Assembly (NCBI GenBank): GCA_015680685.1
Contig: MNCI01002615.1
Location: forward strand, 104,524 to 168,523
DNA: 64,000 bases
Reading direction: 5' to 3'
DNA from: Gnetum montanum
Taxonomy: Eukaryota; Plantae; Gnetophyta
Part shown: piece after piece, positions 31,601-59,570 of the stretch
Layout: every line of letters starts with the position of its first letter
Numbering within the stretch: the stretch's first letter is position 1
Notes under the pieces: generated by a model
What the model saw: the letters and a program-made list of their open reading frames with translations, nothing else
Told to the model about the DNA's origin: nothing
Databases searched by the model: none
Translations under genes and position numbers: made by a program

Positions 31601-32511
31601 GAGCAAACTTGCTTGTGTAATGTTTACTTGAATGTTCTCAGGTGCCTTCCCCCTCAACCACTCTTGTGCTAGTTCCACTTGACTAAACATTAGAATGAGA
31701 GTTTCTACAGAATGTCTAGTGAGGGAGATAGGAACATTGGTGGAAATAGAAGTGTTGGCACATTTTGGCCATTTCATGGAACAGCAAGAGTAGATACTAG
31801 AAAAAGACAACTTGTAAAAGAATGTATGGTTGAAAATTTGAAAATAAAAATGTGGCTTTAAGGTTATGGATTGAAAAATTTTTAAAACAAAGGGAAGACT
31901 CTAACTGATGCAATTGATAAATCATCATCAGAAGAATACATTTGGACTTATGTGTCACCAGAATATGCCATGCTTTAGGAGGAAAAGTTGCAGTCTTTCA
32001 CACTTCCTCACCCGATGTTATGCATTGGAAACATACTGCAAATTGAACTCATGGGAAGGGTTCAAGTTCAGGAATTTGACGGACTACATTATATCTCTGC
32101 ATATGCCATGTGCATGTTGTTGGGAGACCCATTTCAACCTTGGACTTTGCTTCACTAAGAATCCAAGAAAGTATGTCTTAACAAATTCTAAAGAGCAACA
32201 TCCTCTTGCGGATTTTGAGAATGCATCTTTCGTTGACATGGATGAAGATGCAGATAATTCTATCGAACAGAACACCCAAATCAGAGCTAGGAGGATATAA
32301 CAACAGTAGATTTAAATGGTGATTATGAGTTGGAATCGGACAATGAAGATTTTCTCCTTTAAGTTCATACGAGATTCATTCAGCCTTGGTTATGTGAAGG
32401 TTGATATATTTGACCTGTTCCTGTTATCAAATGTCATCAACAACATCAACATCATTTATGGAAGCATTATTGTGCTGTCCAAACAACAATGAAAACCCAA
32501 GCAGGGCATTG

Positions 32512-33180
32512 GACTGTCTAGATATAATGGCCAAATATACAACTTGGATTGAGGCTGATAAGGCATTGCATCCAGTTCTCTTGTCGAATGGTAATTTGAA
32601 GGAACATAGAGACTTAGAGGGTGGTAGGCACTATGCAGTATGGGAGGATCCTTTTAAGAAGCCTTCCTATCTTTTTGCTTTGGTTGCAGGCCGGTTAGTT
32701 AGCAAGGATGACACTTTTGTAACAAAATTGGGACGCACTATTAACCTCCGCATTTGGACTCCTACAGAGCACTTTTCAAAGACTTCTTATGCTATGTATT
32801 CCCTTAAAGCAGCAATGAAATGGGATGAGGATGTGTTTGGTTTAGAATATGATCTTGATCTATTTAATATCGTTGTTGTACCTGATTTTAACATGGGTGC
32901 AATGGAAAACAAAAGCCTTAATATATTCAATTCAAGACTTGTCTTAGCATCCCCAGAGACAGCAACTGATAGTGACTACGCTGCTATCCTAGGGGTCATT
33001 GGGCATGAGTATTTCCACAACTAGACTAGAAATAGGGTTACATGTAGAGATTGGTTTCAATTAAGTTTAAAGGAAGGTCTTACTGTTTTTTGAGATCAAG
33101 AGTTTTCATCTGACATGGGAAGCCATGCTGTGAAGCGTATTTCCGATGTTTCTAAGCTTCATAATTACCAATTTCCATAG
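32512..33180 (+). pseudogene. intronless fragment of M1 family alanyl aminopeptidase (PepN/puromycin-sensitive type)
   Basis: [90 protein letters not shown] and HEXXH(X18)E motifs are present, with three in-frame stops and no frameshifts or introns. Confidence 0.93.
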
Positions 33181-33866
33181 CAATTCCAGAACTAGAATCA
33201 GACATGACATTGTTCAACACGTCCAATTACGGTGATTTCAAGTATCAAGGCAACAGCTACCTACACTCCTTCAACTGCGCGGAAAATACAATTACCTTAT
33301 CATGCATCGGCGGATTCACACCAAGATTTGAACCAAGAGCTCTGGGACATCATTTCATTATGTAAGTCCAAGGCTACCGATACATAGCACCATCGATCAA
33401 AAACTGTGCTATTTTGTTCCACTGCCGTTGCTTGGGAGCTACGCCGCTTCAAGAGGAAACCCGGGCTCTTTCTGGTGTGTAGAGCTAGACAGAAAGCACT
33501 CAATGATGTAGTTAGATACGTGATTTCTCTGTGTTATCTCAGTCGATCGCCATAATTCTGTCACTATCGGTAGTTACCCTTAAAAAAGAAAAAAACCATA
33601 CAACATTTATTTTTGGTTTTGATATAAATTATTTAATTGCTGATGCCCTTGGTTGTGTATCAAGTAAAGTATTAATATTGATTTAAAAATGGAATTTGTG
33701 CAACAATTTTTCAAAGTCCTATGTGAATTGAACACTTGTCAATGGAAATAGTGGTTATAACCACCACAAAGGCCACTTGTCAACTACAACCTCTTTTTCT
33801 CCACAAAGGCCACTTGTCAACTAAATGGGACATGTGTCAACTGCAACTTGTTTGTCTCCATGGTGA

Positions 33867-33983
33867 ACACTTGGCAACTGAAGGAAGACACTTGGCAACT
33901 AAAGGAAGACACTTGGCAACTGAATGAAGACACTTGGCAACTACATGAAGACACTTGGCAACTATATGGAACACTTGTCAACT
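33867..33983 (+). repeat. 21-bp tandem repeat upstream of the LTR TATA box
   Basis: ACACTTGGCAACT at 33867, 33888, 33909, 33930 and 33951, with a variant at 33971. Confidence 0.9.
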
Positions 33984-36900
33984 GTAGCCTTTTTATCTCT
34001 ATGGTGGTTAAAACCACCCAAGATATTTTGTAACTTCCATACCTATCTTTGAACCCTATAAAAAGGCTTCAGGGGTCAAGGGGGAAGGGGGAACATCACA
34101 CTTGAGGTCTCACACATCACACTTGGGATCTTGGAAGATTTGTAAAGAAGATTGCTTGTAAGATGGCTTGCTAGAATAAAGATTTCAGCCTCTTTGTCAT
34201 AGTCCTGTGAGTTATGCATTTCATTTTTTGTTTTGTTTAAATTGTTTAGCTAGTGGTTTAGATAGTATCATCCTTGGCAAGTAATTTTGGGATTTTTAGA
34301 TTGCTCTTATTGTTCTTGTTGCCCGATAGAAATTTCTATTAAAATTTTGCCATAGAAGCGCTTGTGTTTAAAAGCCTTAAGAGCATTTTAGTAGTAAATT
34401 TCATTATTGTGCAACGTGTGGGAACTGCTATTGGGATTGTTGTAAGAGAGCCTCTGTTTGTAGTCACGCCGTTGAACAATTCAGTAGTCGAGAGGGTTCA
34501 GAAAATCTTTGGTATTTTGATGGGACCAGAATAGCTTCTTTTTATCTTTAAAGTGAATTCTCGTGGTATTTCAATCAGAAATTGTCAAGTCTTTTAAAGG
34601 TTCTGTTTGAATGCAATCGTTGACATCTATTATCTAGTCAAAATGGAGTCTCGTACGTGGTAGTTTACGCAGCAATTTTTGGTAGCATAGTAGGATTGTC
34701 TTGAAGATATTGCTTGTTTGAGCCTTGGAAGTTTGAACAATTCGTAGATATTGAATTTGGGATAGCTTTATTGCGAAGTGTTTACTCGTGTCATTTTACC
34801 TTGTTTAAATATTTGAGGTTTACACAAATCGGCTTTCTTTTCTTTTCTGTTTATTTCCATCAAATCTTGCTCTATTTCTAGTTTTCTTGTGGAACTATCT
34901 CTTTCTCTAGGGAAAATTAGGAGTAGATTGCGGAGTTGTGCTCAAATGTTTTTGCAAAATTTTATTTGTTACAAGTAGGTATTATAAGGACCGCGTAGAC
35001 TAGGCAGTTGAACAAAATAGGAAATTTTCAACAACTCACAGTACTTGGCAAAGTTGGCTGAATCTCTTTAAAGTAAGTCATTTGTAGTTTACATACAACG
35101 TAATCATTACATTTCTCACAACTGCACACCGCAACAGCACACACACATACTCACATTAACTACTGAGTTTATTTGGAGGTATTTGGGCCTTAGTGTTGCC
35201 AGAGACCAGCAGGCACCTAAATCCTGTTCGAGGACACTCGTTGGCAGTCACGTCCCAAACGGTCGCCAACAAGAAGGACCTGTAAGTAAAAGAAAAATGG
35301 CTAGCATCAGTATAGTTATGTTTAGACCATTGAATACTTAAGACCCAAATAGCCATAAAACCTTAGTTACAACATAGAAAACCATTCCTTTTCTCACCTT
35401 TCTTCTTATTACTTGGTGAAGCTCATGTGGGGATCTNGAAGGACCTATAAGTAAAAGAAAAATGGCTAGCATCAGTATAGTTATGTTTAGACCATTGAAT
35501 ACTTAAGACCCAAATAGCCATAAAACCTTAGTTACAACATAGAAAACCATTCCTTTTCTCACCTTTCTTCTTATTACTTGGTGAAGCTCATGTGGGGATC
35601 TTAGTAGTGATACCCATATCTCTGATAACCTTGGGATCTGTCCACTAGCTATGTGCTATTTTGGTAGCCACACACCTCTTTTAAATAGAGTCAAATCTGG
35701 TGGGTTATTCATCAAATTCCCCTCTTATCTATTCAAAAATGACATGTCTAATATTGTAACCTTTGATGAATTCATTCAATGGGGTGTGAATTCATTCACT
35801 TTTGATCAAACCTTGCTCATTAATCCTGTACCTACAATATGTGCATAAAATTAAAAAGTTAGGAAAGAATACTAAATTAGATAAGGCCAAAACATTAAAA
35901 CATATAGTAGCCATGCTTACCCTTGTAATTGGTACATGGTGCCAAGAGGATTTTCGAATATAGAGTGGGCTCTTTGTGCTACCATCAGAGTATTATTCAT
36001 GTTGTATCATGAATACTTTGGCATCATCCAAATATATGAGAGGTATTGTGCACTAAGGTTATCTATCGACTCTCTTGCTACTCGAGTCTTTGGATAATTA
36101 GTTATAAATAGAGAAATTAGATGTGTAGATCTAGGTAGTAGAGTTTCCACTATGATTTTTGCCACCTCCTCAAATAAGTATGACCACATTATCATACTAA
36201 AATTCTAAAGAGTGTCCTCAAGAAAAACCATAGTGACAGCTTATCCAATTCCATGTTAGGAAGGGGGGTGAGGACCATAGGTTGACTTAGATAGCATAAA
36301 ATGCTGACCAACTCCACGATGATGAGGAATGGCTTAAGTAGGATCCTACAGGGGGAAAACATGAACATCATTAGAACCACATTTCAACACTTATAATTTC
36401 TTGACAAGATTTATAAAATCCTAGTCAAGGGTGAGATTAGCCTCTGTAAAAAGCTTTAAGGTGTTTATTCAAGTTTTCTTAAGAAATTCTACAAAAAAAT
36501 TATTATAAACTTTCATAGCCTTTTACTTCATAGCAAAAACATACTAGCTAGAATTATGCCTTAGTTCAAATCATGCATCAACTTAGGAAATGCATCAATA
36601 CATAGAAAAAACAACCATAGTAAAAAAACTTACTAAAAATAGTAAAAATATCTTTTTCTCATGAAACCAAATTTGAAACATAGTGTGCATTTTTAGTTCT
36701 CCCCAAGGGCATGGAAATTAACAAGAGAAATATCTAAGTATGTTAACCATATCCATCCCCAAAGGGATAAAGTGCGATAACTGAATTAAGATTAATTAAC
36801 ATAGCCTTGAAAAAAAATTCATCCTAACTTTGATTTTAGTGATTCCACCACAAAAGGAACTCTAAAATCCTAAGCTTTTCAACCATGTCCATTACAACCA

Positions 36901-37989
36901 ACAACACATTACCATTTTTTTTTATCAAACATAGCCAAAATAAGTAAACCATAGTCATCAACCTTATTCCCCTTTTGCATAAGGTTGGAAAAAATTCATT
37001 AAAAATCATTTGAGCTTCAAATAGAGTGATTCCACCACTATTTGAAATCTTGAATCAAGCCCTATTCACCCACACTTAGCAAAAATTTAAAATCCCATCC
37101 ATTTATTCAAAAAAAATTCATTACTTTGGATGAAAATCTAAAAAATGACACAAACCTTTGATTACACAATTGAGTTAAAATAGCCATAACTTAATCATTT
37201 TACATTCAAATTAGATGAAACAATAGCCATTAAAAATATTAAACATAAAAATAAAAACCCATATCATTAAAATTTGCAAAAATTAAGTCATTTCCTTAAC
37301 AAAAAATACATAACATTGCTTGCTTTTTGTATCAAAAAGCATAAAAAAACACAGAACCTATAAAACCTAACTTGATTTAGCCATAGATTACAACAAAAAT
37401 AGTTAAACCAACCTATACCCATCAGAAACACACATCAAAATAAGTAGGTAGGATTTCATTAAGGTTTAATTTGACAAGTCCTTCATCCTAGATCTAAGAA
37501 GAATGGCCCCATGATAAAATTTTTAGAAAAAGCACAAAAAATGCAAGCCTATTTTTAAAAATTGAATCTACCAAGGTAAAAATAGAAAAATAACCCTAGA
37601 TCTACATGAAAATAGCCAAAATATGACACAATATTTCATTGGAATTCAATTTTATCAATCTCTTTTGAGTAGATCTAACAAAAATAACCTTTTCCTCATT
37701 AGGAAAACACAAAAACATCTAGGAAATCATGAAAAAGCAAAGAATGATCTACCTTAGAGAAAATGAGGAAGATCCTTGAATGGAAACAACCTTGGGAAAC
37801 TTGAAGATCTTCTTGGAGGCCTCATTTGATGCATGGATCTTGGGATTTTTCCTACTACATTTCTTCATCATGGTTGCACAACGTTGAGAAGACTTGGAAA
37901 CTGAGGGAGTTAAAGCTTCCATGCTGGGTAGGAGAGCATTTGATGCTTCAATGCTAAAAGTTAATGAAATTTATTGTAACAATTGGTGT

Positions 37990-41169: not shown

Positions 41170-42725
41170 GGAATTAGACACTTAATAATCAAAGGAAATT
41201 CTCAACTTATGGTTAACCAAGTTATTGTTGCATGTAAAGCCAAACAATTACAACCGTACTATGATCTAGGGAAGTAATTATTACAACAATTCTAGACATT
41301 GATATCCAACACATACCTTGAAATTAGAATTCCATATCCAATGCAATTACAACACCAGGCCTCAATGTTATGCCAAATGTGTTTAGTAAATTATTCATCT
41401 TAACCATGGATTGTGATATTTCCATCATGCAAAATTCTAAGGCTAGCTTTGTTGCTATTGTTCATACATCTTCTGCCAACGAGTGGTATGACGATATCAG
41501 GTTTTACCTTATGTATGGTGAATCCTCATAAGGCTTGACTACCACTCAAAAGAATTCTATACATAAATAATCAAAGTAGTATGTCATCGTAGGTGATAAC
41601 ACATTATGTCAACAATCCTATGATGACATATTACTAAAGTGCTTAGGTAAAACCAAAGCCAAAATAGTCCTAGAGGGGGTTCATGAGGGTGTATGTGGAG
41701 GACATATAGGACCTAGAGCTATAATCACTAAGAATATATGGTTAGGCTATTTTTTGCCTTATATGAAAAGCAAGTTCCTGTATAAGGTTAAACGTTGTGA
41801 TACATGCCAATGGCATAGCAACTTGATACACATACCACCTACTAAGTTGCATACAACTTAGATCACTTGGTTGTTTTAAAGATGGGAGTTGCATATCATT
41901 TGACCTATAATTTCTAAGTCTTCCATAGGAAATAGCTTCATCATCACCGCAACCAAATACTTTACAAAGTGGATTGAAGATATTTCTTTAAGGAATATTA
42001 CATCTAAGGAAGTCTGTAAATTTATCTTGGATAACATTGTAGCCTATTTTTGGCATACCCATGACCATAGTTAGATACAATGGACCATATTTTAGTAGCC
42101 AAGAGACAAAATATTTCTGTCATGACTAAGGCATTAACCATTCCTTCTTGTCATCTTATTACCTCAAGCTAATGGACAAGTGGAGGCAAGCAATAAGGCC
42201 ATCATCAAATAGCTCAAGAAAATGCTTGATAATAGCAAGAAAAAATTGCATGAGTGACTTGTCCATGTACTTTGGGCCTATCATACAACTTACCATATAA
42301 CAACTGGTGTAACAACTTATAGCTTGGTTTATGATTCTAGAGTTTTTTTACCTTTTGAATTACATGTACCATTACTTTAGCTATCCTTGACTGACTTCAT
42401 TAATGATGAGCAAAGCGAGGAGTTGCAAATAGTGGACCTAGACTTACTAGAGGATCGACAAATGCAAGTGCTTGCTCACATTGAACACTATCAAGAGAGA
42501 AAAAAGTGGCAGCACCACCATAACTTGACCAAGTGTAAGATCAAGGAGGATGACTTAGTACTCAACTTCATCTATGAGCATGGAGATCAATTCTTAGCCA
42601 ACTGAGAAGGGTCCTTCCTTGTCACCAAAGCCTATGATAATAAACCATTAAGGATAGCTGAAATGGATGGAAATAAGTTTGCCAATCTATTCAATCATTC
42701 TTATCTAAAGCCTTATTACATATAG
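41170..42725 (+). pseudogene. archaeal-type RNase H (C-terminal part) and integrase, degenerate
   Basis: GIRHLIIKGNSQLMVNQV. WYDDIRFYL..VHEGVCGGHIG..CDTCQ. IITATKYFTKWIE, QANGQVEASNK, VLWAYHTT. Confidence 0.9.
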
Positions 42726-42756
42726 CTAACAATCATCAACAAGTGATCATGCTTCA

Positions 42757-43000
42757 CCATAGCCTATCGAGACCTTAAACTAGCAACATGACCTATAGAG
42801 GCCTAAAACTAGTAACACCACTATCTGTTGAGGCCTTAAATTGGTAATAAATCATACCAATGCCTAACACTAGTGATGCTATGGCCTACTAAGGTCTTAA
42901 ATTAGTACCATGATCTACTATGACCTTAAACTAGCACCATAGCCTACCAAGGCCTTAGACTAGTACAATGACTTGCCATGATCCTAAACTAGCAACATGG
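42757..43000 (+). repeat. 29-bp tandem array, third cluster
   Basis: Same GGCCTTAAACTAGCA unit as 28409-28640. Confidence 0.8.
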
Positions 43001-45316
43001 TAACCTAGGTAGCTTAGTTTGATCATTTTGTATGACCTATATGCATTGTAACATTATAACATGTTCTATTTTCTTTCTTTTCTTGTCCTCTTGGAGTTGT
43101 GTTTGTAGGATCAAGCTTAGGACCATCACAAGGACGCAACGCATTATAGTAGCAAGTCACCACATGATCTCAATGTGCAAGATTTTGTGAGTTTGTCCTA
43201 CTATGTCAAGATCTCTTATACCATTTCCCTCCATCTAACTCCACTCCTTAAGCCTAATCCCATAACCTCATTATGACCTTCCATACCTTAGAAAAAATGT
43301 TAACCTATGTTTGCCACTCATGCATTATAGTTTTGTGATATCCCTTCATCATGCTTCATCCTCAATTTCACTCATTTAGTGGAAAAAACTATTAAGTTCA
43401 TCAAGTATAACACACCTCGCTTTGATGGAAAAACCAAGTTCATTGAGTGTCACACAACACTCAATGGAAAAACCATAGCAAAACAACCTTGGTAATGAGA
43501 CCTAATGAAGGCCTCACCCCAAATAGAAAAATGTGGGGAGTAGAAAATTACCAAGGGGCTAAATGGCCAATAAAACCTCAAAACCCAATGGCCAAAGAAA
43601 TATTACACTAAATTGATTAAGTCCTCAAATGCATTTGTCAAGCAACCAACACTTTAAAACATTCAGTATCATGATATAGCCATGATGACAACACTTAGAC
43701 TACATTGTTAGCCTCCATGACCATCTTCCTAATTACCATTACCACTCCTTCATCATAGCCTTATCCCATCATCATAAGCACTCTTCAACATGGTTTGACA
43801 TGACTAGATCAAGCACGATGAGGAAACACTAGTGCTAGTCCTATAGTGGTGTTTTGTATTCTTTGTCAATGCCTCTCAGGTCAATCCTCTAAACACCAAC
43901 AAAGAGGAGCCAATGAAACACCACCAAATTTGCATGTTGTAACCTTTGTGATCCCATCCCATGAAACTAGAGGTAAAACTTCATTGTAAATGTGAAGGTT
44001 GTAACCCATGAGGAGCAATCTAACATATTTCATACTTTTGGGGCTAAAAATACCTCATAAGTGGTCAAAGCCTTATTCCTTGAGTAAAAAGAGTCATCTA
44101 GTATCTATATTTGGACTTGGGGAAGTCAAAAATGCCTTTTGGAATGCCAAAATGGTATTTTAATGGATTTTACCTTATAGGAGGATAAGCCAGCTAGGAG
44201 ACATCAAAACTAGTGTGGAGGAGTGTACGTGGATGAAACTCACTTATCCCTAGCATGGCCAAGGGGGTAACTTAGCCTGGAGGAGTTAACCTTCATGCCT
44301 AGTGTTAATCACTCATCTCCCTCAACATTGACACTCTTCCCCTAGCATGGCAGAGTTAGCAACTAGGATGCATGAGGGTAGATCTTACCTACCCTTCTTG
44401 AATGTGGTAGTAATTTGGTAGCCAATTTTTTAGCTATTTATAGCCAATTTGTAGCCCAAATCATGGCTAAAACCTTATAAAAACTAAATATTGATATCAT
44501 TTCAACGTTCCACACTTTTGCAATTACACATCCTTGGCATTTTTCATACTTTGATCATTTGACACCTAAGAGGTCTTGTTTCTAGTAAAAACAATGCTTC
44601 TTAAGGCTTCTCATTTTGGAACCTTCCTAGCTCTATTACCCCTATTACCCCCCTTGGGATCTATGAGCTTTAGGTGTCAACATTACCCCCTGGGATCCCC
44701 AAATCCCAACATGAAGCTTATTTGTTGTTCCAATCCTTCACATTTCTCAGCATTTTCAATGATAAACATTTCATATCTTGATTTACAATAGAGGAGGTTC
44801 AAAAACATCAAGAGTGGCCAAGAATCCAAATCGTGAAGTCGATTCTATCTTCTTTAATGGGCTTGGAATCCCTGCCCAAGTGGACCCCCATTTGATCTCC
44901 CACAAGCACTTTTATACACACCTCTAAACTCATTCTTTATTTATTTAATAAATTTTATATTTTATTTTGTGTGCAATTGGTATTCATTTGAATTTTAAAT
45001 TTTCAAATTTTTACATTTTTACACCACCATTTTGCACCTAGTAAGTCCCTGGGTGATCTACCAAATTGGCCAAAGCATCATAAATCCCATTTTTTCTTGA
45101 AAGCCCTAGGGAATTGAGGTTGAGGCTATTTGTGGCTAAGAATCCTTGGTTTTCCAACAATCAAGATTTTTTGTTGCAACAATCTAGATTTAGTATTTAA
45201 AGGTGCTTAATTAGTGGAGAGAACCTACTACAACATTATTGATATCAGAGCTTTGTGATTGAAACATAGAGTTTATTATTTCTTGGAAATATGTTAATGA
45301 TTTTTTCAATTTCAGA

Positions 45317-47886: not shown

Positions 47887-49289
47887 TGTGGATTGAGAAC
47901 TTAGAAGGAGGGTTGAATAAGTTCCCCAATTTAAATTGCACCTATCACACAAAGACACCATATTTTACATGGTTTCCTAACTTGGGTACATCCACACTCA
48001 AAGGGTAGAATCTATGCACACCTTCTGACTTTGTTTCTAAATAAAATGTGATTTAAAGGATACCACACCCTCTATAAGGTTAGAGCTCTACACTAGAGTG
48101 TTTTATTGCTACAAAACCACTCAATCCCACAAGGTTTCAACAATCTCAAAATGTGATTTCAAGCATCCCACAACCTTTACAAGATTGAGCTCCACTTTGA
48201 AGTGTTTTGATGCTACAAAACCATTCAACTATGCAAGATCCTAACAACCTCAATGTGGATGCCTTCTCACAAGAAGTACATCAACCATGTAGGGCTACAA
48301 GGAAAAGAGAAAGACACAAGAAAAGAATGTAACTAAATTTACAAGTCCTTGATGTTGAAGCTCAATACAATATACAACCAAGCAAATGATGTTACAATGA
48401 AGAACAAGAATACAATAACATAGATTAGATAATGATTGATCTTGTGTGTATAGTACTTGCACAATTTCCAAGATTTTGGTATCTTCTTATAGCCTCAAAG
48501 TTTCCAAAAACTCCTCAAAATTTATGCAACATCTACCAAACAGCTAGTGTAGATGTATCCTTCAAAGTTGAGATGTCTAACTAAGATTTGTCTCAATTTA
48601 GGAGAGATGTCTCATTGGAAAATGGGATGTCTCTATGGAGACATCTACTATTTTGGGATACATCTTCTCAAATTTGGTTTCTATCTTCTAAGGCTTTCTC
48701 TTGTTAATTTGCCCTCTTGCCAATCCTTGAAGCATCTTCATTTGATTTGTAGCCTTCATTTTCAACCATGCTCATTCATGCTCTCATCTTGGCCTATGTA
48801 ATCTTCACTTTATCATTTCATTGTAAATCTTATTTTTTTGAGTTCTTAGATTTCATGTGAAGTTCTTATTCATGTCTTGCAAACACATTATCCATAATAA
48901 ACATTTTATGTTCTCCATTTTCCTTAAGGTTTTGACATATCAAAAGGTCAACAATCTACCCTTTTGGTGATATCAAAAACTTAAGAAAATATGTTAGTAG
49001 ATATAAGATTTAAATAACAATAAATAATAGAAATACTTAAGATCTATAAATTCCAATGATATCCAAAGGGAATCATGGAGGTGAAACATAAGAACTTAAG
49101 CTAATAAATTTGAGACTATAGATTTCCACAAACTGTCCAAAGGCCAACCTATCTATAAGGCATAAGCATAAAGTTTACAAGCATCACAACCATCATACAT
49201 AGTGTTGTTCCATAATGTGCAAATGTACAGCCCAAAAATTCTCCCTCTTTTTGGACGTCGTTCAAAAGGAGGAACCACCCAAGGACTCT

Positions 49290-50920
49290 AGTCGCTTATC
49301 TTAGTGGCATCATGAAATTCCTCATTAGAAGCAACTACAACATGAGAAGGTCTATAGGTCTCCTCATCATCATCATCACTACTAGTACTAGTGCTAGAGA
49401 CATGCTACTCATTGTTATCATTCGAAGAAGGCATATGAACTAGAGCCCTCTATGGATGAAGCTTCACTCAAAATTGAGATGAAGCAAGTAGATTCTGCTG
49501 GGTGGATCCTACTAGGATGGATCCTACTTAGAGGAGGAGGAAGAACCCTTCCTCTAATAGGTGATAGGATTGATAGGTCTCCACTGAGAAGAGGTCCTAA
49601 AGATGCACTCCATGTCCTACTACTCAAAAGTCCTTAGAGCATCAACCTAATGATATGAACAAGGTCCAAGCTACATGGGATTAGGATGTTGCCCTTGGAC
49701 ATGTACTAATGGTGCATTAGGCTTCTCTAAATCCAATGTGTTTCCTAAGTCATAGGTCTAACAAGGTCTAGCTACTACTTAATATCTCAGTGGGACTAGG
49801 AAGTCTTCCTCACTGTCTAAAATGGGAGGAATGGTAATATCCTCAAATTGATGCTTATCAAGAGGAAGAGGTACCCTAGCTACATCCATTCTCTTATGAA
49901 GGTAAGAGAGATTCCTGCCAATATTCACAATAGCATGAGTAAAGGGTTTCAACAGCTTCTTCATAGAATATGTCATCTAATTACCAATAGATTTAGACCT
50001 TCTAAATTGAGAAGAGGCCTAAGATGGTGATTTTATTTCTAGATTTGTGAGGTTTGGTGCTAATTTTTAGTTTGTTATTGTGGGTGAAGCTCCTATTTTA
50101 TGAAGATTCACCAAGGCTCCTCTTTCCTTTAAGTAATGCATGTCAAGAATGGAAACACCTCTCTATCAGATTAGCGAATTGATGAGATGAGGATGCCCAT
50201 AGATTCTCTCCTTGGTGAATAAGCCCAACATGTCTTGGTAAAGAGTGTGACCCAAGTCTAAGGATTATCCTTTGAGAAGGCAATAGAGAACAAATGTTTG
50301 GACAGGCAACAAATAATTATAGATTTCTCCTTTTATAATGATATTGTAAAAAACAAGGAGAGAGAGGATGGAAGCATATGGGCCCATTTTATTCCTATAA
50401 ATTATCCCAATATGAAGAGACATTGACTCCCCAAAAAAAGCATCAAAAAATTCATCTTGGGAGATAGGAATCACACCATTTGTGAAGATGTCATTCCTAG
50501 AATGAATGATGATCCTAAACACATAAGCACTAGAAATCCTAAGAATTTCATTAACTACTTGGGGAGAAATATCAATTAACATACCCCAAACCATAGTAGT
50601 AAAAGCCCCAACAGAAGCATTTATAATCACAATGTTGCTATAGAATTCTCTTATGAGAATTGCAAGTGCATAAAAATTCATGGAAATGAATGTAACCTAG
50701 TTCAAAACTTAAAAGAATTCCTTCTGTTGATGCTACTAGAAACAAAGAGAATGCTTAAAGATAATAGAGATGGTTTGAGTTACATCAAACCAATGTTAGG
50801 CATCAATGGACTTGAATTATGGAGTGTAAGCACTAGCAGTGCTAGAGAAATATTCCTTTGACTTCTTGCTCTTCCTTGGCAATGTCCTTGACATTGCAAC
50901 CTTCTTGTAGGCCATGGCTT
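49290..50920 (-). pseudogene. env-like/accessory ORF of the SIRE-like element
   Basis: LIREFYSN..TTMVWGMLIDISPQVVNEILRI motif, located immediately upstream of multiple PPT-like tracts and the 3' LTR. Confidence 0.65.
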
Positions 50921-51329
50921 TGAAGAAAAGTGCTCAACTCATTGTAGTTGGTGAAACCCTATTTGTCTCCCCTTGGACATTTATGCTTAGATGTGGATAA
51001 ATGAATAAAAAATGAAGCTTTGAATTTATATAATCATGCTTAATGATGGTTTTTTACAAAACGATATATGTCTTCTTTGAGACATAGATGTCTATGTTGC
51101 ACTTATAATCAACAAGTAGATGTCTCATTGGAAAATTAGATATCTTAGCCACATCGAATAGAAACAAAGGTAGACATCTCTTTTCAAAAGTAGATGTCTT
51201 TGAGTAGACAATTCCTCAGTCATGAAGATGGAAGATGTCTTTAGGTAGACATCTCAGCAAGAAAGGATTTAGGGATGGCTATCATGAATTATAGTCTTTA
51301 GAGATATTCACAATGAACTGAAAACTTAC

Positions 51330-53300
51330 CTCTACTTACCTTTCTTGCTAAAGAGAATGAAGGTGCCTAAGTAGCTTGAGAATGAGATCCTTGTTTTGGG
51401 GTTCTTCTCACATAAATTTCTTCTATTTCCAAAGATTAGCTTCCTCTTAAATATTTTTTTTGGAGAGGATTCTCTCACTATCATTTTTTTTCTTCTTGAT
51501 TCTCCATACCTTCTTAACTCCCTTGTCCTTTTGATTTTTTCCCATTCTCTTATTGTCCTACATACTTTCCTTTCTAAAAACATTTGGATAAGACCAAGGA
51601 GTTCTATGATATGTCTAGGTCTTAATATGATAATGCTTGAAATTGCAAATCCATTATTTATGCCCAAATCTATTACAATAATAACACCTAACCCTTTTTT
51701 TTAGATTAATTCAAATACATTTTGCGAAGATGCTTGTTCTTGTTGATAGCAACCAAGTCCACTTTTATCATTTGGACTTCTTCCTTGACCAAGAACTATT
51801 CAAAGTAATTCTTTTCCTTTGAGTTGTCCCTATTCTCTTATTGTCCTACATACTTTCCTTTTAAAAGACATTTGGATAAGACCAAGGAGTTCTAAGATAT
51901 GTCTAGGTGCTCATATGATAATGCTTTAAATTGCAAACCCAGTTTATGCCCAAATCTATTACAGTAATAACACCTAACCTTTTTGTTTAGATTAAAGTTA
52001 TTAGACCTTGAAGTTTCTCTTTGGTTAAATGTAGTGCCAATAGTTACATCAATCTTTGAAGGGGCTTCTTATTCGAATACATTTTGTGGAGATGCTTCTT
52101 CTTGTTGACAATAACCAAGTCCACTTTTATCATTTGGACTTCTTCCTTGTCCAGTAACTATTCAAAGTGATTCTTTTCCTTTGACTAGCCCCTCATTTAC
52201 AAGCTTAGCATCTACAAGTTCTTCCTTAATTTGCTCATAGGACATGGTTATTTTTTATTCTCAGGACTTGGGTCTAAGGTTTTTTTTTTTTTTTTTGTGA
52301 GATCTAAAATGTTCATATTTAATAAAGAAACATCTTGATCTTTATTCTTTAATTTTATACAAATATTTTGAAGAGATAAAAGTTCATTGAGCAAGAGGTC
52401 ATACCTATCTTCTTTAGGTTCCATTTGATGATCATCATCTAACAAGCTAGTATCATCATCTGTGAGAGACATACAGATGAGATATGAATCTTTTGAAGTG
52501 TCATCCACTTCTTCTTTACTTTGTTGTCCATCATCCCAACTTGAGTAGAGGTTGATCTTTTTCATGTTCATGTTAGTCTTATCCTTTTGTTGTAACTATC
52601 ATTGATAGAATATTCAAGGGTCACATGGCCTCTTCCACCACATACCCAACATTCTATTGACAAAGCATTAAAATTAGAATTTGAAAAGTTCTTACTTCTA
52701 TCCCTACCTTTAAAGTTGGATTGGTTGGGTCATGGTTGATTAAGGCTTCTTTCCTTCCTTGCTAGAAGCCTTTGAACTCTACTTGATAAAAGAGTTATTT
52801 CTTCTTTGTTGTTCAATTCTTATTCAACCGGTTCCTTCTCTTTGGATGCTAATTTCAATGCAATGGGCTTTTCTTTTATTACTCCTTTTCTTATAAGAAT
52901 CCTTTCATAAGCAATGAGAGCACTTTGGAGTCCTTCAAATTTTAAGATTGAAAAATCCCTAATTTCTTCCATAGCTATAACCTTAGGTCTAAGTCTATGT
53001 TGTAGTGTTCTAATCATTTTAATGATTACATCACCTTTGGGTAAGTCATTGTCTATATCCCTAATTTCTATAACTAGATCATTTGCCCTAGAAAAATAAT
53101 CTTTTATCTTTTCACCTTCTCTCATTTTAAGTTTGTCATACTCACTTTGCAAAATCAAGAGTTTTGATTATTTAACTATGGATGTGCCGTCATTGGTAGC
53201 TTCTAAGGTTTTCCAAATTTGTTTAGTAGTTCTACTTTTAGATACTCTATTAAATTCAAACTTCTTTAATGCACAATATAAATAATTTTTTTCTTTAGCA
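51330..53300 (-). pseudogene. copia gag with zinc knuckle and internally duplicated C-terminal region
   Basis: LQSEYDKLKMREGEKIKDYF and CWVCGGRGHV. Duplicated blocks at 51542-51693/51830-51978 and 51714-51822/52076-52184. Confidence 0.8.
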
Positions 53301-53319
53301 CTATGTCATGACTTATGTT

Positions 53320-53590
53320 TTCTTTGTTGAAGAAAAATAAGGATTTAAAGTGGGATAATGAAACCCAAGGTAGCTTTAACTTGTTAAAAGAAAAAATTAC
53401 CAATGAACCAATACTTACAATTCTAGATTTTTAGAAGCTTTTTCAAGTGGAGTTGAATGAAAGTAGACTTTCCATTTGTGGGGTACTTTCACAAGAACGT
53501 AGGCCTATTGCTTTCTTTTCTAAAAAGTTGAATGAGCTAATGAAAAAATATAGCATATATGAGAAGGAGTTGTACACTATTCTGCAATTT
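53320..53590 (+). pseudogene. gypsy RT-RNase H fragment
   Basis: LLKKNKDLKWD..LKEKITNEPIL..GVLSQERRPIAFFSKKLNE..YSIYEKELY. Confidence 0.85.
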
Positions 53591-56500
53591 TCACTTTGGT
53601 TTTCTTCACTTAAACAAGTTTTTTACATATGGACAATGGCATAATAATAGAGGTAGCTCCAAAATCAACCAAACAGCTGTGAAGATATTTGTCTTTTAAC
53701 TTCATTGTCAAAAGAAAATGAGGAGCTTCCTTGTCAAGAGTACAATCATAACTAGCTTTTGTTATCTTATCAACATTAGATACATAGCTTAACTCTAACT
53801 CTGCAACTTTCTTTTTACCTTTAATAAACTCTAAACCATTTCTTTGCTAATCCCCCATCTGTAACAATTGATATATACTAATATTGGCCTTAACATGTTT
53901 AATATCTTCAATCAAACTCTATACTTCATATCCATAAAAGCCTAGTTCCTTAATTCATTTGTTAAAAGACTGATTTTGAGTACATTTCTCTACTTGATCT
54001 TCTTTACTTTTATTCTTTTCTCTTCTACTTGGTTCAAAAACCTTTCTCTTTGTGGATGGATTAGAAATGGTGTTTGAAGACCTAGAAGTAGTTAATGTTT
54101 CTTCTGATTGTAGATTATACCCATTTTCTTCATTGTTATTATAGTCTTCATCTAACATTATATCCTCTTCAAAACTTGATGGGGAAGAGATATCACTAGA
54201 TCCATTAATAGAATATTTTCTTGCATAATGAACACTAGATATCTCATTATTAAATTCAATATCAAGGAAGTTAGAGGTAAGTTTTCTATCCTCAGATTCA
54301 ATATCAGATCACTTTCATCATCATCTTATACTAATTTAGTATCTTGATGTTTATGTTTTCTATTTTTCTTTTCCTCCTTTATTTTAACTTTCTCCAAAGC
54401 TTTTTCTAGTTTTACTATGTTGCTGGATAAATCTTTCATTAACTATCCCTTATCAAATTCTTTGTTTTCTAACTCTTGCTCTATCTTAATACAAGATGGC
54501 CCTAGTAATGCCTTAAGTTGAGAAAAATCTTGCATAAGAATCATCATTTTCTCTTCTCTTTTTTGAGTTGCAAAAATTTTTTCATAATTCAAGTTCAATT
54601 GTTTTTCTAACTATATAGCTTCACTAAAATAGTCATTTAGTGTTATCAATTTTAGAGTTCTCCTTAACCAAATTGAAATATTGGGATTCACAGCCTTAAG
54701 ATAAGTATCTCTAAGCATTTCATCTGATGGTCTATACTATCTTTGAAAGAGCCCACAAATGTGTTGAAATTTAATGTTGAAATCTCTAATTGACTCTTTA
54801 ACTCCTTACTTAGCTTGTACTAGTCCATAGTATAATTGTTGTTGATCCAATTGATTACTAAACTGGCCCAAGGTTATACTTTTAATGTCATCCCAACTTG
54901 TGATATTGTTGCTTGGCAAGTTTGAATATCAAATCTAAGCCATATCCTTTAAATTTGCTACAAACAATCTACAAGTTTGATCTTAATGTTGAAAATTTGC
55001 ATAAGATAAAGCTAACTCAAATAGGTAAATATATTCTTCAACCAAGTAAGCTTTTTTGAGAATAAAAGGTTTAGGAAAATATTTGTAAACTACCTTAGGA
55101 ATATCATTGTAGTTTTGAAACCTGAATGATGTAACTCTTTGGTAAGGATTTTCCATCTTGTTAGAACTCCTTTTGATCATTGAACCATTATATTTCTTTG
55201 ACTTTCTCTTATAGACTAATAAGCCTGACAAAAGGGGTGATCTTCTTATCCTTCTGGTTTTTACTCCACTACTTGTCCCAAACTCAAAAACCTTTTTATG
55301 TTATTCTTCTGATAAATAATCAATCTTATAATCAAAAAATTCTAAATCTTTCAAAGTACCAATCTATTCAATAATTAACTTAAAATAGTATCTAATTTTC
55401 AAGCTCTCCTAGCAACAAAAGAATTGTTAGTGCACTAGGACTATCAAACTATTTTGAATGTAATGTACTTAGGTAACAAAGTTTCTTACCCTCCTTCTAG
55501 CACTGAAAGAACTATTGGCAACTATTTGGGACTACCAACGTTGGGGGACTTTGGTCTCATGATTGGGGTCATGGAAAATGAAGGTGTTCTTCAAATAGGG
55601 TTTAGGTGCTTACTAGTATCTATCAACACCAAGCCCCATATATCTCTAAATAGACTCAGTGGTTATGAAACAAACTAAATTTGAATATGTGTTTGTTGTT
55701 GTAAATGTTGAAATGGTTTGATTGTGTATAAAACTATAACTAGCTATCATAAAAGAAATTCAACCAGCTTTATCAAATACTGTGAGTTGTTGAAGGTTCC
55801 AATTTTGTCAAGTCACTTAGTCCATATAGTCCCTATAGTACATTACCTATAACAAATAAAATTTCACAAAAGCATTTGAGCATAATTCTTCCAATCTACT
55901 CTTAATTTTCCCCAAAGAGAAAATTTCAAAAGAAAACTAGAAATAGAATTAAATTTAATGGATTTTAGAAAGAGAAAAGAAAAGAAAGCAAATTTGTGTG
56001 GGATCTCAAACATTTAAGCAAGATAAATTGACATGAGGAAACACTTCACAATAAAGCTACTCCAATTCAATCTATTATGAATTGTCTAAACCCTTTGAGC
56101 TCAACATGTAATTTCATAATAGACACATTTATTTAACTACGAAAACGCTTTATAAATGACAAAGTACAAGCTTCTATTGAACTAGTCAATATTGGTCAAG
56201 AATTGCAAATGATAGAACTTCTAATAAAATTTGACAATTTCAAGATTGCAATATTAAGGCAATAAACTTTAAAAATAAAGAAGCTATTTCAATCATTTCA
56301 AAGTATAAAAGATTTTCTAGATTCCCTAAACTCAAATAGGTAATTTCTATAAGACATTATTATTAAATTGCTCAAAATGCATTTCTAATACAACATAAGC
56401 TCTTATTTGGAAAACCTTAATAGAAGTCTAATATTACGCAAAAATAGAGCTATAAGGGCAACCTAGAAAAATATCAAAATTAAATGCCAAGCATGATACT

Positions 56501-57854
56501 ATTTAAAAGATTAGCTAAGTAACTAAAACAAAATGGGAAGAAATCAACTCACATGATTAAAACAAAGTAGCTGAATTAATGTCTTTAGTAAGACATGCTT
56601 AACAAAGTATCTTTTTTCAATCCTCCTCCTTTCTCAATTCTATCTTTAAAGGCCCTTTTATAGTAACCTTAGGGTAGTTACAATAATCATGAGAAGTTAA
56701 GGGTATTACAAATATCCAAGGAATTAATTCATAACCACTCTAAGATGTTATAGCTTTCATGAAAAATTTAAGCTATATTTAGCAAATGTCTTCTTGAGAT
56801 TAAAATTAGCTAAAAATATCATGCAACTATCACAGGACAACTTCCATAGGAATAAAAGGAATAATAGCTAAATGTCTTCTTCATACAGGATGTTATACAA
56901 ATATCCCATAAATCTCTTTTCTCCGTGAATAAAAATACCCCCTTTTTAAAGTGAATAAAGGAAAAGATGTTAAAGTGAAATCACAGGTTTTAATAAATTA
57001 TAGCAAAATTAACAATACTGGAGCCACACGAATGATAAAACAAATACCAACAATTGGGTAGGCATATTTCGCGACTTAATTCAACAATCCAAACTGCTGA
57101 TGTATTTTTAGCTAATCTGTGAACGATCGATTATCATTACAGATGTAGCGATATCTTCTCAAAATCTAGAGCTTAACGTCACAGCTAAGCAGCAGACGCA
57201 TAAAAAAAAAACAAAACAAATACTTGCATCGCCATGGGTGATGCCACGGCAAAATCCAACAGTAGGTTTTGTTACAGTCTCTACTTCAGACCAAACTGCA
57301 AGCAGTTCTGGCCAACTGCCTGGTATGCTAGTGGCGTCTCCTTTTTAGCATCTTCAAAGGTGAGAACCTATAAATTTTCTACGGGAATTCAAATGTTACC
57401 CTAACAAAACTCCTGAGGGTTTTGTTGGAATTCCCACAAACTGCAGAACCTCCTCCAGAACTGTAATGGTGATAATTTCGGTACCATGGGGGAATTGGAC
57501 CATGTGCATCGTAGTAGAACTGCATCTTACTAGGAGCCATATTCATTTTTCTGATCCTGCTGCCCCTGTAATCATGCCTTACAGGAATCATTGAGAGCTT
57601 TTACCAGAATGATGGTGTCTCTTATAGCGATTGCCACTTCTCTATGCCATTTAACGCTAAGGTCGTTGTGGCTATTACCACCACCGACGACGATGAACGC
57701 CTGGAGACGTGTGTGCTGCCTGTCTCACGTTGGCTTCTAGATATGCCGCTTGTGTTCCTACTGCTTGCTTGCTACCATGCAAACCGAATTTTCGATCTGC
57801 CCATCTTCAGGTACCTTCTTTCAAACCCTGCATTGATGAAATCATCGGTCTCTA

Positions 57855-58095
57855 CGTTTTGGTTTACATCTGATGGAAATCGTTGTGTGTGTAGTGATGG
57901 GATTGATCGACTTACATCGAAAATGTGGTAACATGGAAGATGCATGGCAGGTGTTTAATCAAATGTTTGCACTGTAACGTACAACACCATGCTTGCCGCC
58001 TATGCTAAAGTGACTCGATTCAACGACACCTTTGGCTTAATCAGAATAATGAAATTACAGGAACTTAGTGTAAATGCTACCAGTTTTGTGAATTT
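57855..58095 (+). pseudogene. PLS-type pentatricopeptide repeat gene fragment
   Basis: GLIDLHRKCGNMEDAWQVFNQM / VTYNTMLAAYAK..DTFGLIRIMKLQELSVNATSFVNL, with a frameshift. Confidence 0.8.
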
Positions 58096-58189
58096 GATCC
58101 AGGTCTGTCGTTGCTATGAAGAAGATTCAGCAGCCATCATCATGTCTGCAACTCCTCTTGTGTGGTTCTACAGGAATGTACTTTTTATC

Positions 58190-58345
58190 CAGGTTTTTTA
58201 GAATCCTAGTGCAGGCAACACACCCTTGGAATTCATCTTTAGAGAAATTAACCCCCACAAAGTTAGGAAACTTAGTTAATGACTCGGGAATTAGGCCCGC
58301 GAAATTGCTGTGAGAAGTATCAATGTACTAAATCTCTGTAAGCTT
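58190..58345 (-). pseudogene. plant extracellular LRR fragment (LRR-RLK/RLP type)
   Basis: Manual minus-strand translation I*YIDTSHSNFAGLIPESLTKFPNFVGVNFSKDEFQGCV fits LxxLDLSxNxFxGxIPxxLxxLxxLxxLNFSxNxFxG. Confidence 0.65.
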
Positions 58346-58424
58346 TTGATTTACGTTAGATCTTAAACAATTGTATTATTGTTATGGATCGTTTATTTTG
58401 CTGCTATTTCTTTAGTTCCATTCT

Positions 58425-58570
58425 GAGAACGGAAGAATGAACGAGGCACAGAAGCTACTTCAGAGGACGCAGAATCGTTCTATCATAGGTTGTAACGTTA
58501 TGATTGCCGGCTACGTTCAGAATAGGCTATTAGATAAGGCAAGAAAATTGTTTGAAAGCCTTCCCATCCC
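58425..58570 (+). pseudogene. second PPR gene fragment
   Basis: NGRMNEAQKLLQRTQNRSIIGCNVMIAGYVQNRLLDKARKLFESLP. Confidence 0.8.
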
Positions 58571-59570
58571 AATGATATTTCGTGGCGTCTGTGATAACGG
58601 CTCCTCATCTCTGATTCAGAGTTTGCTTTTGTCTTTTTGGGTGATTTTTTATGGTTATCCCTGTACCTCATCCTATCTATACCTTGCCATATATCAAGCC
58701 TGTTCTGCCTCTTCCCTGCTGCACGTAATTTATGGCCTCTCGGTAAAAATTGTAAAACACAGTGTAACAGCTACTGATGATAGCTCTTTGCTGCACATCG
58801 TTCTAACAAGAATGATTACATTTCATCTTGGAGAGGGTGACTGATGAGCCGCGATATCGTGTACGCGATATCACATCCACTACGTGATATAAATAAGAGG
58901 CAGCGCCCTTGGTCCCAAAGTAGTTAGACTTAGACCCTTGGCCAGATTCTTGCAGTTTAGTCATTCAGAGTTAGAATTATTTGTGTGTGCCCATAGTAGG
59001 AGTCATAAGAGTGAACGGATCTTTATTCAAACAATTTGTACCTAAACACAATTTTGTGTACGGCAACAAAGACAAACTTTATGATAAACCTTGCAGCATA
59101 CAAAATTAAGCTAATTAGTAATTAATTATTGTGTAATGCTTTTCTAGCTAATTAATATCTCTCTCAACCTTCAACCCCCTTAGTTAAATACACTCAGTAC
59201 GACTACTTCGAGCATGCGTGTAGCACTTGGTAACCCAGTAACGATTAGCATTTGATAATCCCAACAGTGTTGCACTGGTTCAGGATGTGTATGGCAAGTA
59301 GAAACGAATACTGGTGTTAGGAACATTTAGCAACTAGTTAATGAATAGTTAATGTAAGTTAGCCACTTAGTTCTCTCTCCCTCTCCTTTATTAGCGGAAA
59401 ACATAAAAAAAGATAAAAGCTATTGTTGATGCATAAATTTTGGTCATGCCAACACCGGAAAAACTCGTTTGAGGAGACTATAGCCTAGGGCACCTCCTGT
59501 ATGGGTACGGAAACCTAGGAATAGTCTCAGCTGAAAAGAGCCATGTGACCAAGTGATAGAAAGATAGAGA

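Follow-up and report, generated by a model that had tools for sequence, protein, structure and literature searches.

Gene capture by LTR retrotransposons is already known, and is usually described as involving a single gene held in the internal region of the element. The locus considered here raises the question of whether such an element may carry host gene fragments inside the LTR itself, a position that is unusual. The DNA analysed, referred to below as the window, is a stretch of 64,000 nucleotides from Gnetum montanum (contig MNCI01002615.1), and all coordinates are positions within it. A preliminary description of the window had proposed that two related LTRs bear different mosaics of captured host genes in their U3 regions. 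These LTRs are termed here copy 1 and copy 2.

Boundaries of copy 1

The unit and its target-site duplication (TSD) are delimited as follows.

31753 to 35271, plus strand: copy 1, a 3,519-bp solo LTR whose ends, TGTTGGC...GCCAACA, form a 7-bp inverted repeat
31748 to 31752: left copy of the TSD, AGAAG, read from the sequence
35272 to 35276: right copy of the TSD, AGAAG, read from the sequence
31753 to 31785, plus strand: conserved 5' tip of the LTR family, ~33 bp, recognised by contig depth

The TSD is 5 bp long and perfect, with AGAAG directly on both sides of the unit. AGAAG with at most one mismatch, followed by TG, occurs at a single site within 30500-34200, the ~3.7 kb searched upstream, and by our own estimate the chance expectation for AGAAG followed by TGTTGGC is ~1e-4. 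At the right edge, 140-154 contigs per run depart exactly at 35271 into unrelated continuations, with an agreement of 0.37-0.39. At the left, the tip has a summed depth of 1.3e5-4.1e5 at 31763 in public Logan contigs, where depth figures, here and below, are sums over contigs and not copy numbers. The mean/peak ratio of the bin 31585-31781 is 0.148-0.151 in four of four runs; this implies that ~29.5 bp of the bin is deep, which places the start of the tip at ~31752-31753. The tip would be the end of the element that is recognised by integrase.

An empty site is also found. In runs X5 and X6, which represent two related species, contigs connect 31725 with 35438, the insert being absent; they are 80-85% like the window, and on the left the joint falls 27 bp before 31752. 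On the right, 35438 is equivalent to 35273, because 35273-35436 is repeated as 35438-35601. In the reconstructed empty site a minus-strand ORF runs just 61 nt beyond the junction, too short to inform.

The identification of copy 1 as a solo LTR is thus borne out by the termini, the AGAAG TSD, the contig edge at 35271 and the contigs that join the two flanks. Its start had previously been placed at 31823, with TGTATGGTTGAAAA as the 5' terminus, and has to be moved 70 bp further left, to the TGTTGGC at 31753. At 31823, TGTATGGTTGAAAA lacks a fitting TSD, and its pairing with a 9-bp inverted partner at 33594 is no better than chance. The window contains neither a second direct copy of the unit nor a PBS beside copy 1 or copy 2, and no full-length element with paired cargo-bearing LTRs, PBS or PPT is seen. 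Taken together, the termini, TSD, TATA box and abundance make an LTR the most likely identity of the copy 1 unit.

Promoter, core and abundance of the family

Three further features lie in the right-hand part of copy 1.

33846 to 33971, plus strand: tandem repeats of 21 bp (ACACTTGGCAACT...), in the part of the presumed U3 nearest the promoter (repeat family D6)
34057 to 34064, plus strand: TATA box (TATAAAAA), with a counterpart in copy 2 at 56655-56662 on the minus strand
34133 to 35271, plus strand: highly conserved core, presumed R-U5, common to copy 2 by alignment and depth

Four runs, representing four species, give the core a summed depth of 0.5e6-1.7e6. The promoter region stands at ~1e5, and the 5' tip is similarly abundant in public contigs. 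The family of copy 1 is dispersed and very high in copy number, and its copies end sharply against unrelated flanks. Within it the copy number of the 21-bp repeat varies, as many contig joints fall within 33792-33990. The TATA box is conserved in both copies and sits at the border between variable and conserved sequence; an AATAAA at 34175 in copy 1 is not conserved in copy 2. The depth profile as a whole, falling from ~1e5 in the tip to 1e2-1e3 in the cargo and rising again to ~1e5 in the promoter and ~1e6 in the core, fits a fixed tip and a fixed R-U5 core separated by a variable middle.

Two conserved 21-mers gave 0 matches in the metagenome contigs and viral contigs collections, and a protein search with the ORF spanning the tip gave no match. 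Rfam returned nothing at E <= 0.1 for 31000-36000, with no 5S, tRNA or snRNA-like sequence. A small-RNA gene of the Cassandra type within the copy 1 LTR, which was considered as a candidate, was rejected for want of an Rfam match.

Family-atypical DNA within the presumed U3

Between the tip and the promoter region lies DNA that is atypical of the family.

31786 to 33700, plus strand: cargo block in the presumed U3, ~1.9 kb of family-atypical DNA, defined by depth and by the lack of similarity to copy 2
31944 to 32093, plus strand: piece weakly similar to a hypothetical plant protein (phmmer)
32171 to 32253, plus strand: 83-bp GT..AG segment, intron-like and absent from some contigs (joint 32170->32254, runs X5 and X8)
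32512 to 33177, plus strand: fragment of an M1 (PepN-type) aminopeptidase, intron-free, covering the GAMEN and HEXXH region (Pfam, tblastn)
33583 to 33596, plus strand: A-rich run (AAAAAAGAAAAAAA) by the right cargo edge, noted from sequence only

The summed depth of the cargo is 18-2200, which is flank-like and ~1000-fold below that of the R-U5 core, and the cargo has no similarity to copy 2 (z -0.3). The position of the cargo within the LTR, as originally proposed, stands for copy 1: it lies between LTR-type termini with a perfect 5-bp TSD, and upstream of the TATA box.

The presence of an M1 aminopeptidase segment is also upheld. The Pfam Peptidase_M1 match has an E value of 4e-18, and tblastn gives one collinear HSP at 32512-33177, in which ~220 codons align without interruption at 79-82% identity to five plant proteins. 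The ORF has 3,095 homologues, all of them true aminopeptidases and the best at 82%, and no near-identical paralogue is found among these 3,095. The corresponding region of the aminopeptidase gene would be expected to carry introns in plants. The fragment is in sense orientation to the LTR and contains in-frame stops at 33022-33024 and 33091-33093. A 445-nt contig that is 97% identical to it reaches a depth of 247 in run X5, where the flank contigs listed stand at ~8. This depth, and the absence of the 83-bp GT..AG segment from other contigs, indicate that the cargo is multi-copy.

The remainder of the block is less readily assigned. In a phmmer search of 1.84 billion representative sequences, 31944-32093 matches P0122 (E 4.7e-5), a hypothetical protein of Dendrobium thyrsiflorum that has no Pfam domain; identity is 50% along 50 aa. 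A 131-aa ORF at 31905-32297 matches solely a repetitive protein and one domain-less hypothetical orchid protein. ORFs in 33165-33552 have no Pfam match at E <= 1, and the kinase motif that had been read in copy 1 likewise finds no Pfam support even at that threshold. Of the host-gene mosaic described for copy 1, one piece is therefore securely a host gene, whereas a mosaic of several genes is doubtful.

Helitron or MULE ends of its own would mark the cargo as an independent insertion. These were looked for in copy 1 and none was found: no TIR, TSD or Helitron ends accompany the block, and the 9-bp inverted repeat TGTATGGTT/AACCATACA around it is at the chance level, with 29 such pairs per 2 kb. 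A nested Pack-MULE, Helitron or other DNA transposon was accordingly rejected as the cargo, the only inverted repeats being of 9-10 bp and at chance level, with no flanking repeats. The A-rich run at 33583-33596 is possibly a remnant of a poly(A) tract. A LINE-mediated processed pseudogene was rejected as well: similarity to aminopeptidases stops at 33177, 400 bp short of the closest A-run, and direct repeats flank neither the cargo nor the aminopeptidase piece. Among the contigs shown, none bridges the tip/cargo or the cargo/promoter junction.

A second, diverged LTR

Copy 2 lies on the opposite strand and comprises or adjoins the following features.

55513 to 56626, minus strand: core (presumed R-U5) of copy 2, a second and diverged LTR of the family, placed by alignment, with its 3' terminus at 55513
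56627 to 57261, minus strand: promoter region of copy 2; TGTTGG occurs at 57052 and 57261, without significance at either site
57840 to 58570, plus strand: PPR-repeat fragments, antisense to copy 2 (Pfam PPR_2/PPR)

To judge from the homology of the R-U5 core and TATA box, copy 2 is a diverged relative of copy 1. Positions 34133-35234 (plus strand) align with 56626-55588 (minus strand) at 67% identity over 1122 columns, and the best block, 34500-35234 against 56318-55588, reaches 71% (E 2e-85). The 3' termini are homologous, ending ...GGTCGCCAACA at 35271 and ...AGTTGCCAATA at 55513; the 3' end of copy 2 is GCCAATA, giving a shared form ...GCCAAYA. A part common to both copies is thus upheld, with similarity of 67-71% running from ~75 bp past the TATA box to the 3' end. 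The weaker similarity said to extend about 600 bp upstream of the TATA box was not confirmed; local alignments there give z 1.8-3.0 against dinucleotide shuffles. The sole common feature visible in that region is a short motif (AAGACAYTTG...).

The PPR pieces reported near copy 2 are supported by Pfam, at 57840-58198 (frameshifted) and 58416-58570 on the plus strand. The LRR piece reported beside them is not, the ORF at 58130-58327 having no Pfam match at E <= 1. Within the window, copy 2 has no recognisable 5' tip and no TSD matching its 3' flank, GTTCT. Minus-strand tip candidates at 57261, 57052, 59454 and 58808 were discarded: against the copy 1 tip they score no better than shuffled sequence, and none has a matching TSD. 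An insertion that begins at 58841/58842, on the upstream side of copy 2, extends past the window edge. Element A2 (47884-53330, minus strand) was considered as the owner of copy 2 and rejected, because its 3' LTR resembles the LTR of element A and not copy 2.

Proposed origin of the cargo-bearing LTR

Copy 1 is probably a solo LTR of its family with ~1.9 kb of foreign DNA, including a fragment of a host M1 aminopeptidase mRNA, within U3. Its layout runs from the ~33-bp tip through the foreign DNA and the 21-bp repeats to the TATA box at 34057 and the core. Such a structure could arise if reverse transcriptase switched template from element RNA to co-packaged host RNAs and back again, within U3 at the 3' end of the genomic RNA. 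The cargo would then have been doubled to both ends, because U3 templates both LTRs, and integration would have produced the AGAAG duplication that is observed. Recombination between the LTRs would later have left the solo LTR. Acquisition of the cargo is placed before integration because the cargo is multi-copy. Cargo held in U3 would therefore be copied to both LTRs in each cycle and, at this locus, would have persisted through solo-LTR formation.

It had been claimed that the family repeatedly captures and swaps its cargo. This may be so, and one cargo-bearing LTR is established here. A bolder form of the idea is that a permissive cargo slot lies behind the ~33-bp tip, in which pieces of spliced host mRNA are repeatedly inserted and exchanged by template switching, each being doubled per cycle and kept in solo LTRs. 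This is offered tentatively, and we consider it somewhat more likely to be wrong than right.

Alternative explanations

For copy 1, the main competing account is that the cargo arrived after integration, so that a canonical LTR of ~1.6 kb, with the tip joined to the promoter, was split by a repeat fragment or by break-repair filler. The ~1000-fold rarity of the cargo relative to tip and core is in keeping with this, as are the differing depths of its segments (18 to 2200, as though from different repeats) and the lack of a junction-bridging contig among those shown. Neither the block nor the aminopeptidase piece, however, is surrounded by termini, a TSD or a poly(A)+TSD signature, and the aminopeptidase piece is in sense orientation and intron-free, as capture at the RNA level predicts. 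Late arrival is regarded as unlikely. An assembly chimera, in which the ends of copy 1 derive from one insertion and its interior was mis-joined from another locus, is less probable again. Defects of the assembly lie nearby, with a single N at 35437 that separates 164-bp duplicates of 99% identity and an N gap at 59568-59740, and the repetitiveness of the core is extreme; but 31753-35271 contains no N at all and is continuous from tip to cargo to promoter. Finally, it is highly improbable that copy 1, instead of being an LTR, is a non-autonomous DNA transposon whose mobility depends on an integrase-like transposase of the Ginger type. Although the window shows solitary units only, and TG...CA ends are common to Ginger elements (PMC6839031), copy 1 has a 5-bp duplication and a 7-bp TIR, its TATA box stands ahead of a long conserved downstream part, and its abundance is typical of LTR families.

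The position is more evenly balanced for copy 2. The chances are about equal that its LTR begins near 57052-57261, leaving the PPR block (57300-58841) outside as ordinary flanking pseudogene DNA. An LTR of 1.5-1.75 kb would equal tip, promoter and core without cargo; TGTTGG words are present at both 57052 and 57261; the LTR and the PPR pieces point in opposite directions; and the two copies are without similarity upstream of the promoter. On the other hand, the two TGTTGG sites score z 1.1 and -0.06 against the copy 1 tip, which is not significant, neither has a TSD matching the 3' flank, and no polypurine tract lies ahead of them.

Possible significance of cargo within U3

Cargo in U3 differs in its prospects from other captured sequence: it is doubled in each replication cycle, adjoins a promoter, and outlives the element in the solo LTR. 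In an abundant family, cargo of this kind could give rise to numerous scattered exon-fragment copies, from which chimeric transcripts, or small RNAs that target the donor genes, could be made. If the whole family has a slot behind its tip, little of U3 would be required for integrase and promoter functions. Should the proposal of a cargo slot be true, the family would be a retrotransposon counterpart of Pack-MULEs, active genome-wide. The locus itself provides a cleanly bounded example, with a perfect TSD and an empty site in related copies.

Comparison with known systems

In Bs1-type elements the captured sequence appears to occupy the internal region between the LTRs. Bs1 and other gene-transducing LTR retrotransposons have been described in maize, rice, sorghum and gymnosperms (PMC2774510, PMC13317346, PMC13477047), and a maize survey found no element with fragments from more than one gene (PMC2774510). 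Copy 1 resembles them in that a host gene fragment that has passed through RNA would be carried and amplified by an LTR retrotransposon. It departs from them in that its cargo is part of the LTR, with the 5' tip on one side and the promoter on the other.

Foreign sequence inside the LTR is found in BARE-2 and Veju, where aberrant template switching by reverse transcriptase gave rise to a new LTR subfamily; the foreign part is a piece of another retrotransposon in BARE-2 and of unknown origin in Veju (review PMC13317346). Copy 1 shares the location of the foreign sequence with these elements, but in neither of them does it come from the spliced mRNA of a host protein-coding gene. The LTRs of Cassandra, Helenus/Ajax and the retrozymes contain 5S rRNA-like, small-RNA-gene-like or hammerhead sequences (PMC7215508, PMC10886601, PMC9695139). 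A cellular or functional RNA sequence lies within these LTRs, as the cargo does in copy 1, and hence occurs twice per element. Their inserts are small, appear fixed per family and are probably functional for the element; that of copy 1, in contrast, is long, derived from a protein gene, apparently copy-specific and without an Rfam match.

Pack-MULEs, Pack-CACTA and gene-carrying Helitrons likewise hold gene fragments between conserved element ends. These elements work on DNA and retain introns, and they have either TIRs with duplications of 9-11 bp or 3 bp, or Helitron ends. The copy 1 cargo has no such ends, and its aminopeptidase piece is intron-free. The tolerance of U3 for cargo is familiar from double-copy retroviral vectors and from MMTV sag, in which sequence placed in the U3 of the 3' LTR reaches both LTRs during reverse transcription. 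Unlike copy 1, however, the vectors are engineered and sag is a viral gene, so that neither represents the natural capture of host mRNA by a plant retrotransposon.

Ends of the solo LTR

Intron-free DNA derived from a host gene is enclosed, upstream of the TATA box, in a unit that has LTR-type ends and is flanked by a 5-bp duplication. This unit, a plus-strand solo LTR (copy 1), finishes with GCCAACA followed by AGAAG, and AGAAG|TGTTGGC is read upstream at 31748-31759; it carries a 7-bp terminal inverted repeat and sits within a perfect target-site duplication of 5 bp. When 30500-34200 was scanned for AGAAG (at most one mismatch) followed by TG, a single site emerged, that at 31748, and the chance of AGAAG plus TGTTGGC arising in 3 kb is about 1e-4, as estimated from base composition. 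The duplication, the inverted repeat and the unique scan site together place the LTR at 31753-35271 (3,519 bp). The preliminary description had made it too short on the left, where the duplication and inverted repeat move the start outwards by 70 bp.

Logan contigs from four runs of four species were placed on 30600-36500 at a likeness of at least 80%; their summed depth is not a copy number, and only large contrasts are used. In each run 140-154 contigs diverge at 35271 into unrelated sequence (agreement 0.37-0.39), which marks this position as a true repeat terminus. At the opposite end, a short block around 31763 is 1.3e5-4.1e5 deep. The ratio of the mean of bin 31585-31781 to the 31763 peak is 0.148-0.151 in all four runs, corresponding to about 29.5 deep bp, so that the block starts at about 31752-31753, matching exactly the LTR start inferred from the duplication; in the next bin it stops within a few bases of 31785. 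Summed depth is 0.5e6-1.7e6 over the core (34146-35327), about 0.7e5-2.6e5 over the promoter region (33752-34145), about 1e4 in bin 33555-33751 and 18-2200 over 31979-33554, the last being flank-like (left flank 170-3000, right flank 110-7900). These contrasts indicate that the family has a 5' tip of about 33 bp and the promoter-to-end part in common, and not the middle of copy 1. Presumably the conserved tip serves integrase as its recognition end, and the conserved core corresponds to R-U5.

Three contigs, from two of the runs (X5 and X6), connect 31725 straight to 35438 and are 80-85% like the window. Position 35438 is equivalent to 35273, since 35273-35436 recurs as 35438-35601 around a single N. 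The flanks of copy 1 are themselves a moderately repeated older element, and the contigs probably come from paralogues or orthologues of this host element that lack the insert. For the entire 3.5-kb unit they provide an empty site, with the left breakpoint 27 bp short and the intervening letters of the joint not reported.

The recurring 164-bp segment (35273-35601, 99% identical, N at 35437) begins at the second base past the LTR end and is apparently no real duplication; it resembles a contig overlap left unmerged at the boundary of a repeat. On the minus strand, an open frame at 31082-31752 has about 223 codons in the host element (273 including its run into the LTR) and no Pfam match; it probably encodes a protein of the older repeat that received the LTR. 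A tRNA primer-binding-site-like word, TGGCGACCGT, read on the minus strand in the last LTR bases (35259-35271), may be coincidence.

Content of the cargo

Between the tip and the promoter lie about 1.9 kb of family-atypical DNA, the cargo. An M1 aminopeptidase segment had been recognised here from the sequence, and database searches bear this out. ORF 32398-33021 hits Peptidase_M1 at E 4e-18, together with the end of Peptidase_M1_N, and has 3,095 aminopeptidase N relatives in a homologue search; five plant proteins from this search each align in one collinear tblastn HSP at 32512-33177 (77-82% identity; 79-82% for the two that cover the full interval). The fragment is sense relative to the LTR and lies in one reading frame, with about 220 codons free of interruption and stop codons in frame at 33022 and 33091. 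Since introns are numerous in plant M1 aminopeptidase genes, the uninterrupted codons indicate passage through spliced RNA. The piece occurs in multiple copies: one contig of 445 nt with 97% identity to it reaches a depth of 247, whereas the flank contigs listed for that run are at about 8. For a 131-codon ORF to its left (31905-32297), the sole relative is a weak one (E 4.7e-5), a hypothetical orchid protein that has no domains. Some contigs lack an 83-bp GT..AG segment (32171-32253), as though splicing had removed it in part of the copies. No support was found for the kinase piece also proposed for copy 1.

Relationship to the second LTR

Copy 2 is a diverged relative on the minus strand. 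In the self-comparison of the window, the sole significant match between the proposed LTRs joins 34500-35234 (+) to 56318-55588 (-), with 71% identity (E 2e-85); softer scoring widens it to 34133-35234 and 56626-55588, at 67% over 1122 columns. MAFFT alignment puts a TATA box at the same place in both copies (34057-34064 and 56655-56662) and shows homologous 3' termini, ...GGTCGCCAACA at 35271 and ...AGTTGCCAATA at 55513, beyond which similarity ceases. This match, with the common TATA position and 3' ends, upholds the claimed LTR relationship. The weaker similarity said to extend about 600 bp upstream of the TATA box was not confirmed: in local alignments the 600 bp or their halves reach only z 1.8-3.0 against dinucleotide shuffles, and the same comparison of the cargo regions finds no similarity (z -0.3). 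Upstream of the TATA box, only the short motif AAGACAYTTG... is common to both, as a 21-bp-period tandem repeat in copy 1 (33846-33971) and as two occurrences in copy 2.

Of the host-gene pieces described beside copy 2, PPR repeats are present at 57840-58198 and 58416-58570 (+), and the LRR piece found no support. A 5' start of copy 2 was not found within the window, nor a tip candidate with a duplication matching the 3' flank GTTCT, nor a primer-binding site after 55513. Minus-strand TGTTGG at 57052, 57261 and 59454 and TGTTAG at 58808 were compared with the tip of copy 1, and none aligned to it better than shuffled controls. A plus-strand element, with a weak Retrotrans_gag match at 61717-62127, appears to start at 58842 and exit the window. 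A start of copy 2 near 57052-57261 would make it an LTR of about 1.5-1.75 kb free of cargo, with the PPR block flanking it; if its tip lies beyond the 58842 insertion, that block is U3 cargo. The two readings are about evenly balanced.

An assembly gap of Ns (59568-59740) adjoins 159-bp tandem repeats (59693-60320, up to 96% identical) in the presumed LTR of the 58842 element. A G+C-richer minisatellite at 62829-63165 (period 20-31 bp, …CAGCGTAAA…) is in the region of the window's G+C maximum (47%).

Neighbouring elements

The window is AT-rich plant DNA (G+C 31-40% over most of its length), crowded with decayed retrotransposons.

Retrotransposon features of the window
13503-19624: small copia-like element; 1.2-kb direct repeats 13503-14721 and 18388-19624, 82% identical
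15013-15342 and 52823-53167: copia-type gag
41580-41858: integrase zinc-binding domain
47309-47593: reverse-transcriptase fragment
47884-53330, minus strand: relative of the 13503-19624 element; gag 53330-52316, 3' LTR 49013-47884

At 14724 the copia-like element has TGGTATCAGAGC, a primer-binding site for tRNA-iMet, and its gag is recognised at E 9e-17; no pol was recognised among the ORFs scanned. Its relative has no matching 5' LTR and is separated from copy 2 by 2 kb (53330-55512). On the minus strand, ORF 50268-50696 has a weak hit to Pfam Transposase_32 ('putative plant transposon protein'; E 4e-6, under the curated cut-off). At 21866-23182 and 43913-45179, 22 kb from each other, are direct repeats of 1.3 kb with 77.5% identity, perhaps two LTRs from a different family, perhaps an old pair that nested insertions have driven apart. 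At 9680 stands TGGTATCAGAG, again resembling a primer-binding site, which suggests the end of a further LTR near 9678.

Origin of the cargo

The cargo could have been inserted after integration. Around neither the block nor its pieces did a search reveal terminal inverted repeats, direct repeats at the flanks or ends of Helitron type; the cargo is framed by a 9-bp inverted repeat, one among 29 such pairs in 2 kb. The aminopeptidase piece is without the poly(A) and target-site duplication of a LINE-made retrocopy, and a scan of the LTR region found no small-RNA gene. The lack of transposon, retrocopy and small-RNA signatures, with the sense orientation, intron-free state and multiple copies, favours RNA-level acquisition, at a time when the LTR belonged to a mobile element. 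Later insertion is unlikely, and an interior of copy 1 that is an assembly chimera very improbable; both keep this much weight because no contig bridging the junctions is shown.

Acquisition at the RNA level could proceed as follows. Both LTRs would be templated by the U3 that lies 3'-terminally in the genomic RNA. Just behind the attachment tip, reverse transcriptase would switch template into a co-packaged host mRNA and back, and by such a switch in U3 each LTR would come to contain the cargo. Once the LTRs recombined with each other, the cargo would persist in the solo LTR. By the right edge of the cargo is an A-rich run, 33583-33596, which may conjecturally be the poly(A) remnant of a captured RNA.

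Comparison with known systems

Integrase-type DNA transposons also end in TG...CA; their duplications, however, are of 4 bp or 6 bp (PMC6839031), and that of copy 1 is 5 bp, so this reading fits poorly. Gene transduction by plant LTR retrotransposons is established, for example in Bs1 and among 425 maize elements, none with fragments of more than one gene (PMC2774510), and also in rice and sorghum and, from surveys, in gymnosperms (PMC13477047). Foreign sequence lies inside the LTRs of BARE-2 and Veju (PMC13317346), and small-RNA-derived inserts are likewise known inside the LTRs of Cassandra, Helenus/Ajax and retrozymes (PMC7215508, PMC10886601, PMC9695139). Long, copy-specific U3 cargo derived from protein genes was not met as a described class in the literature searched.
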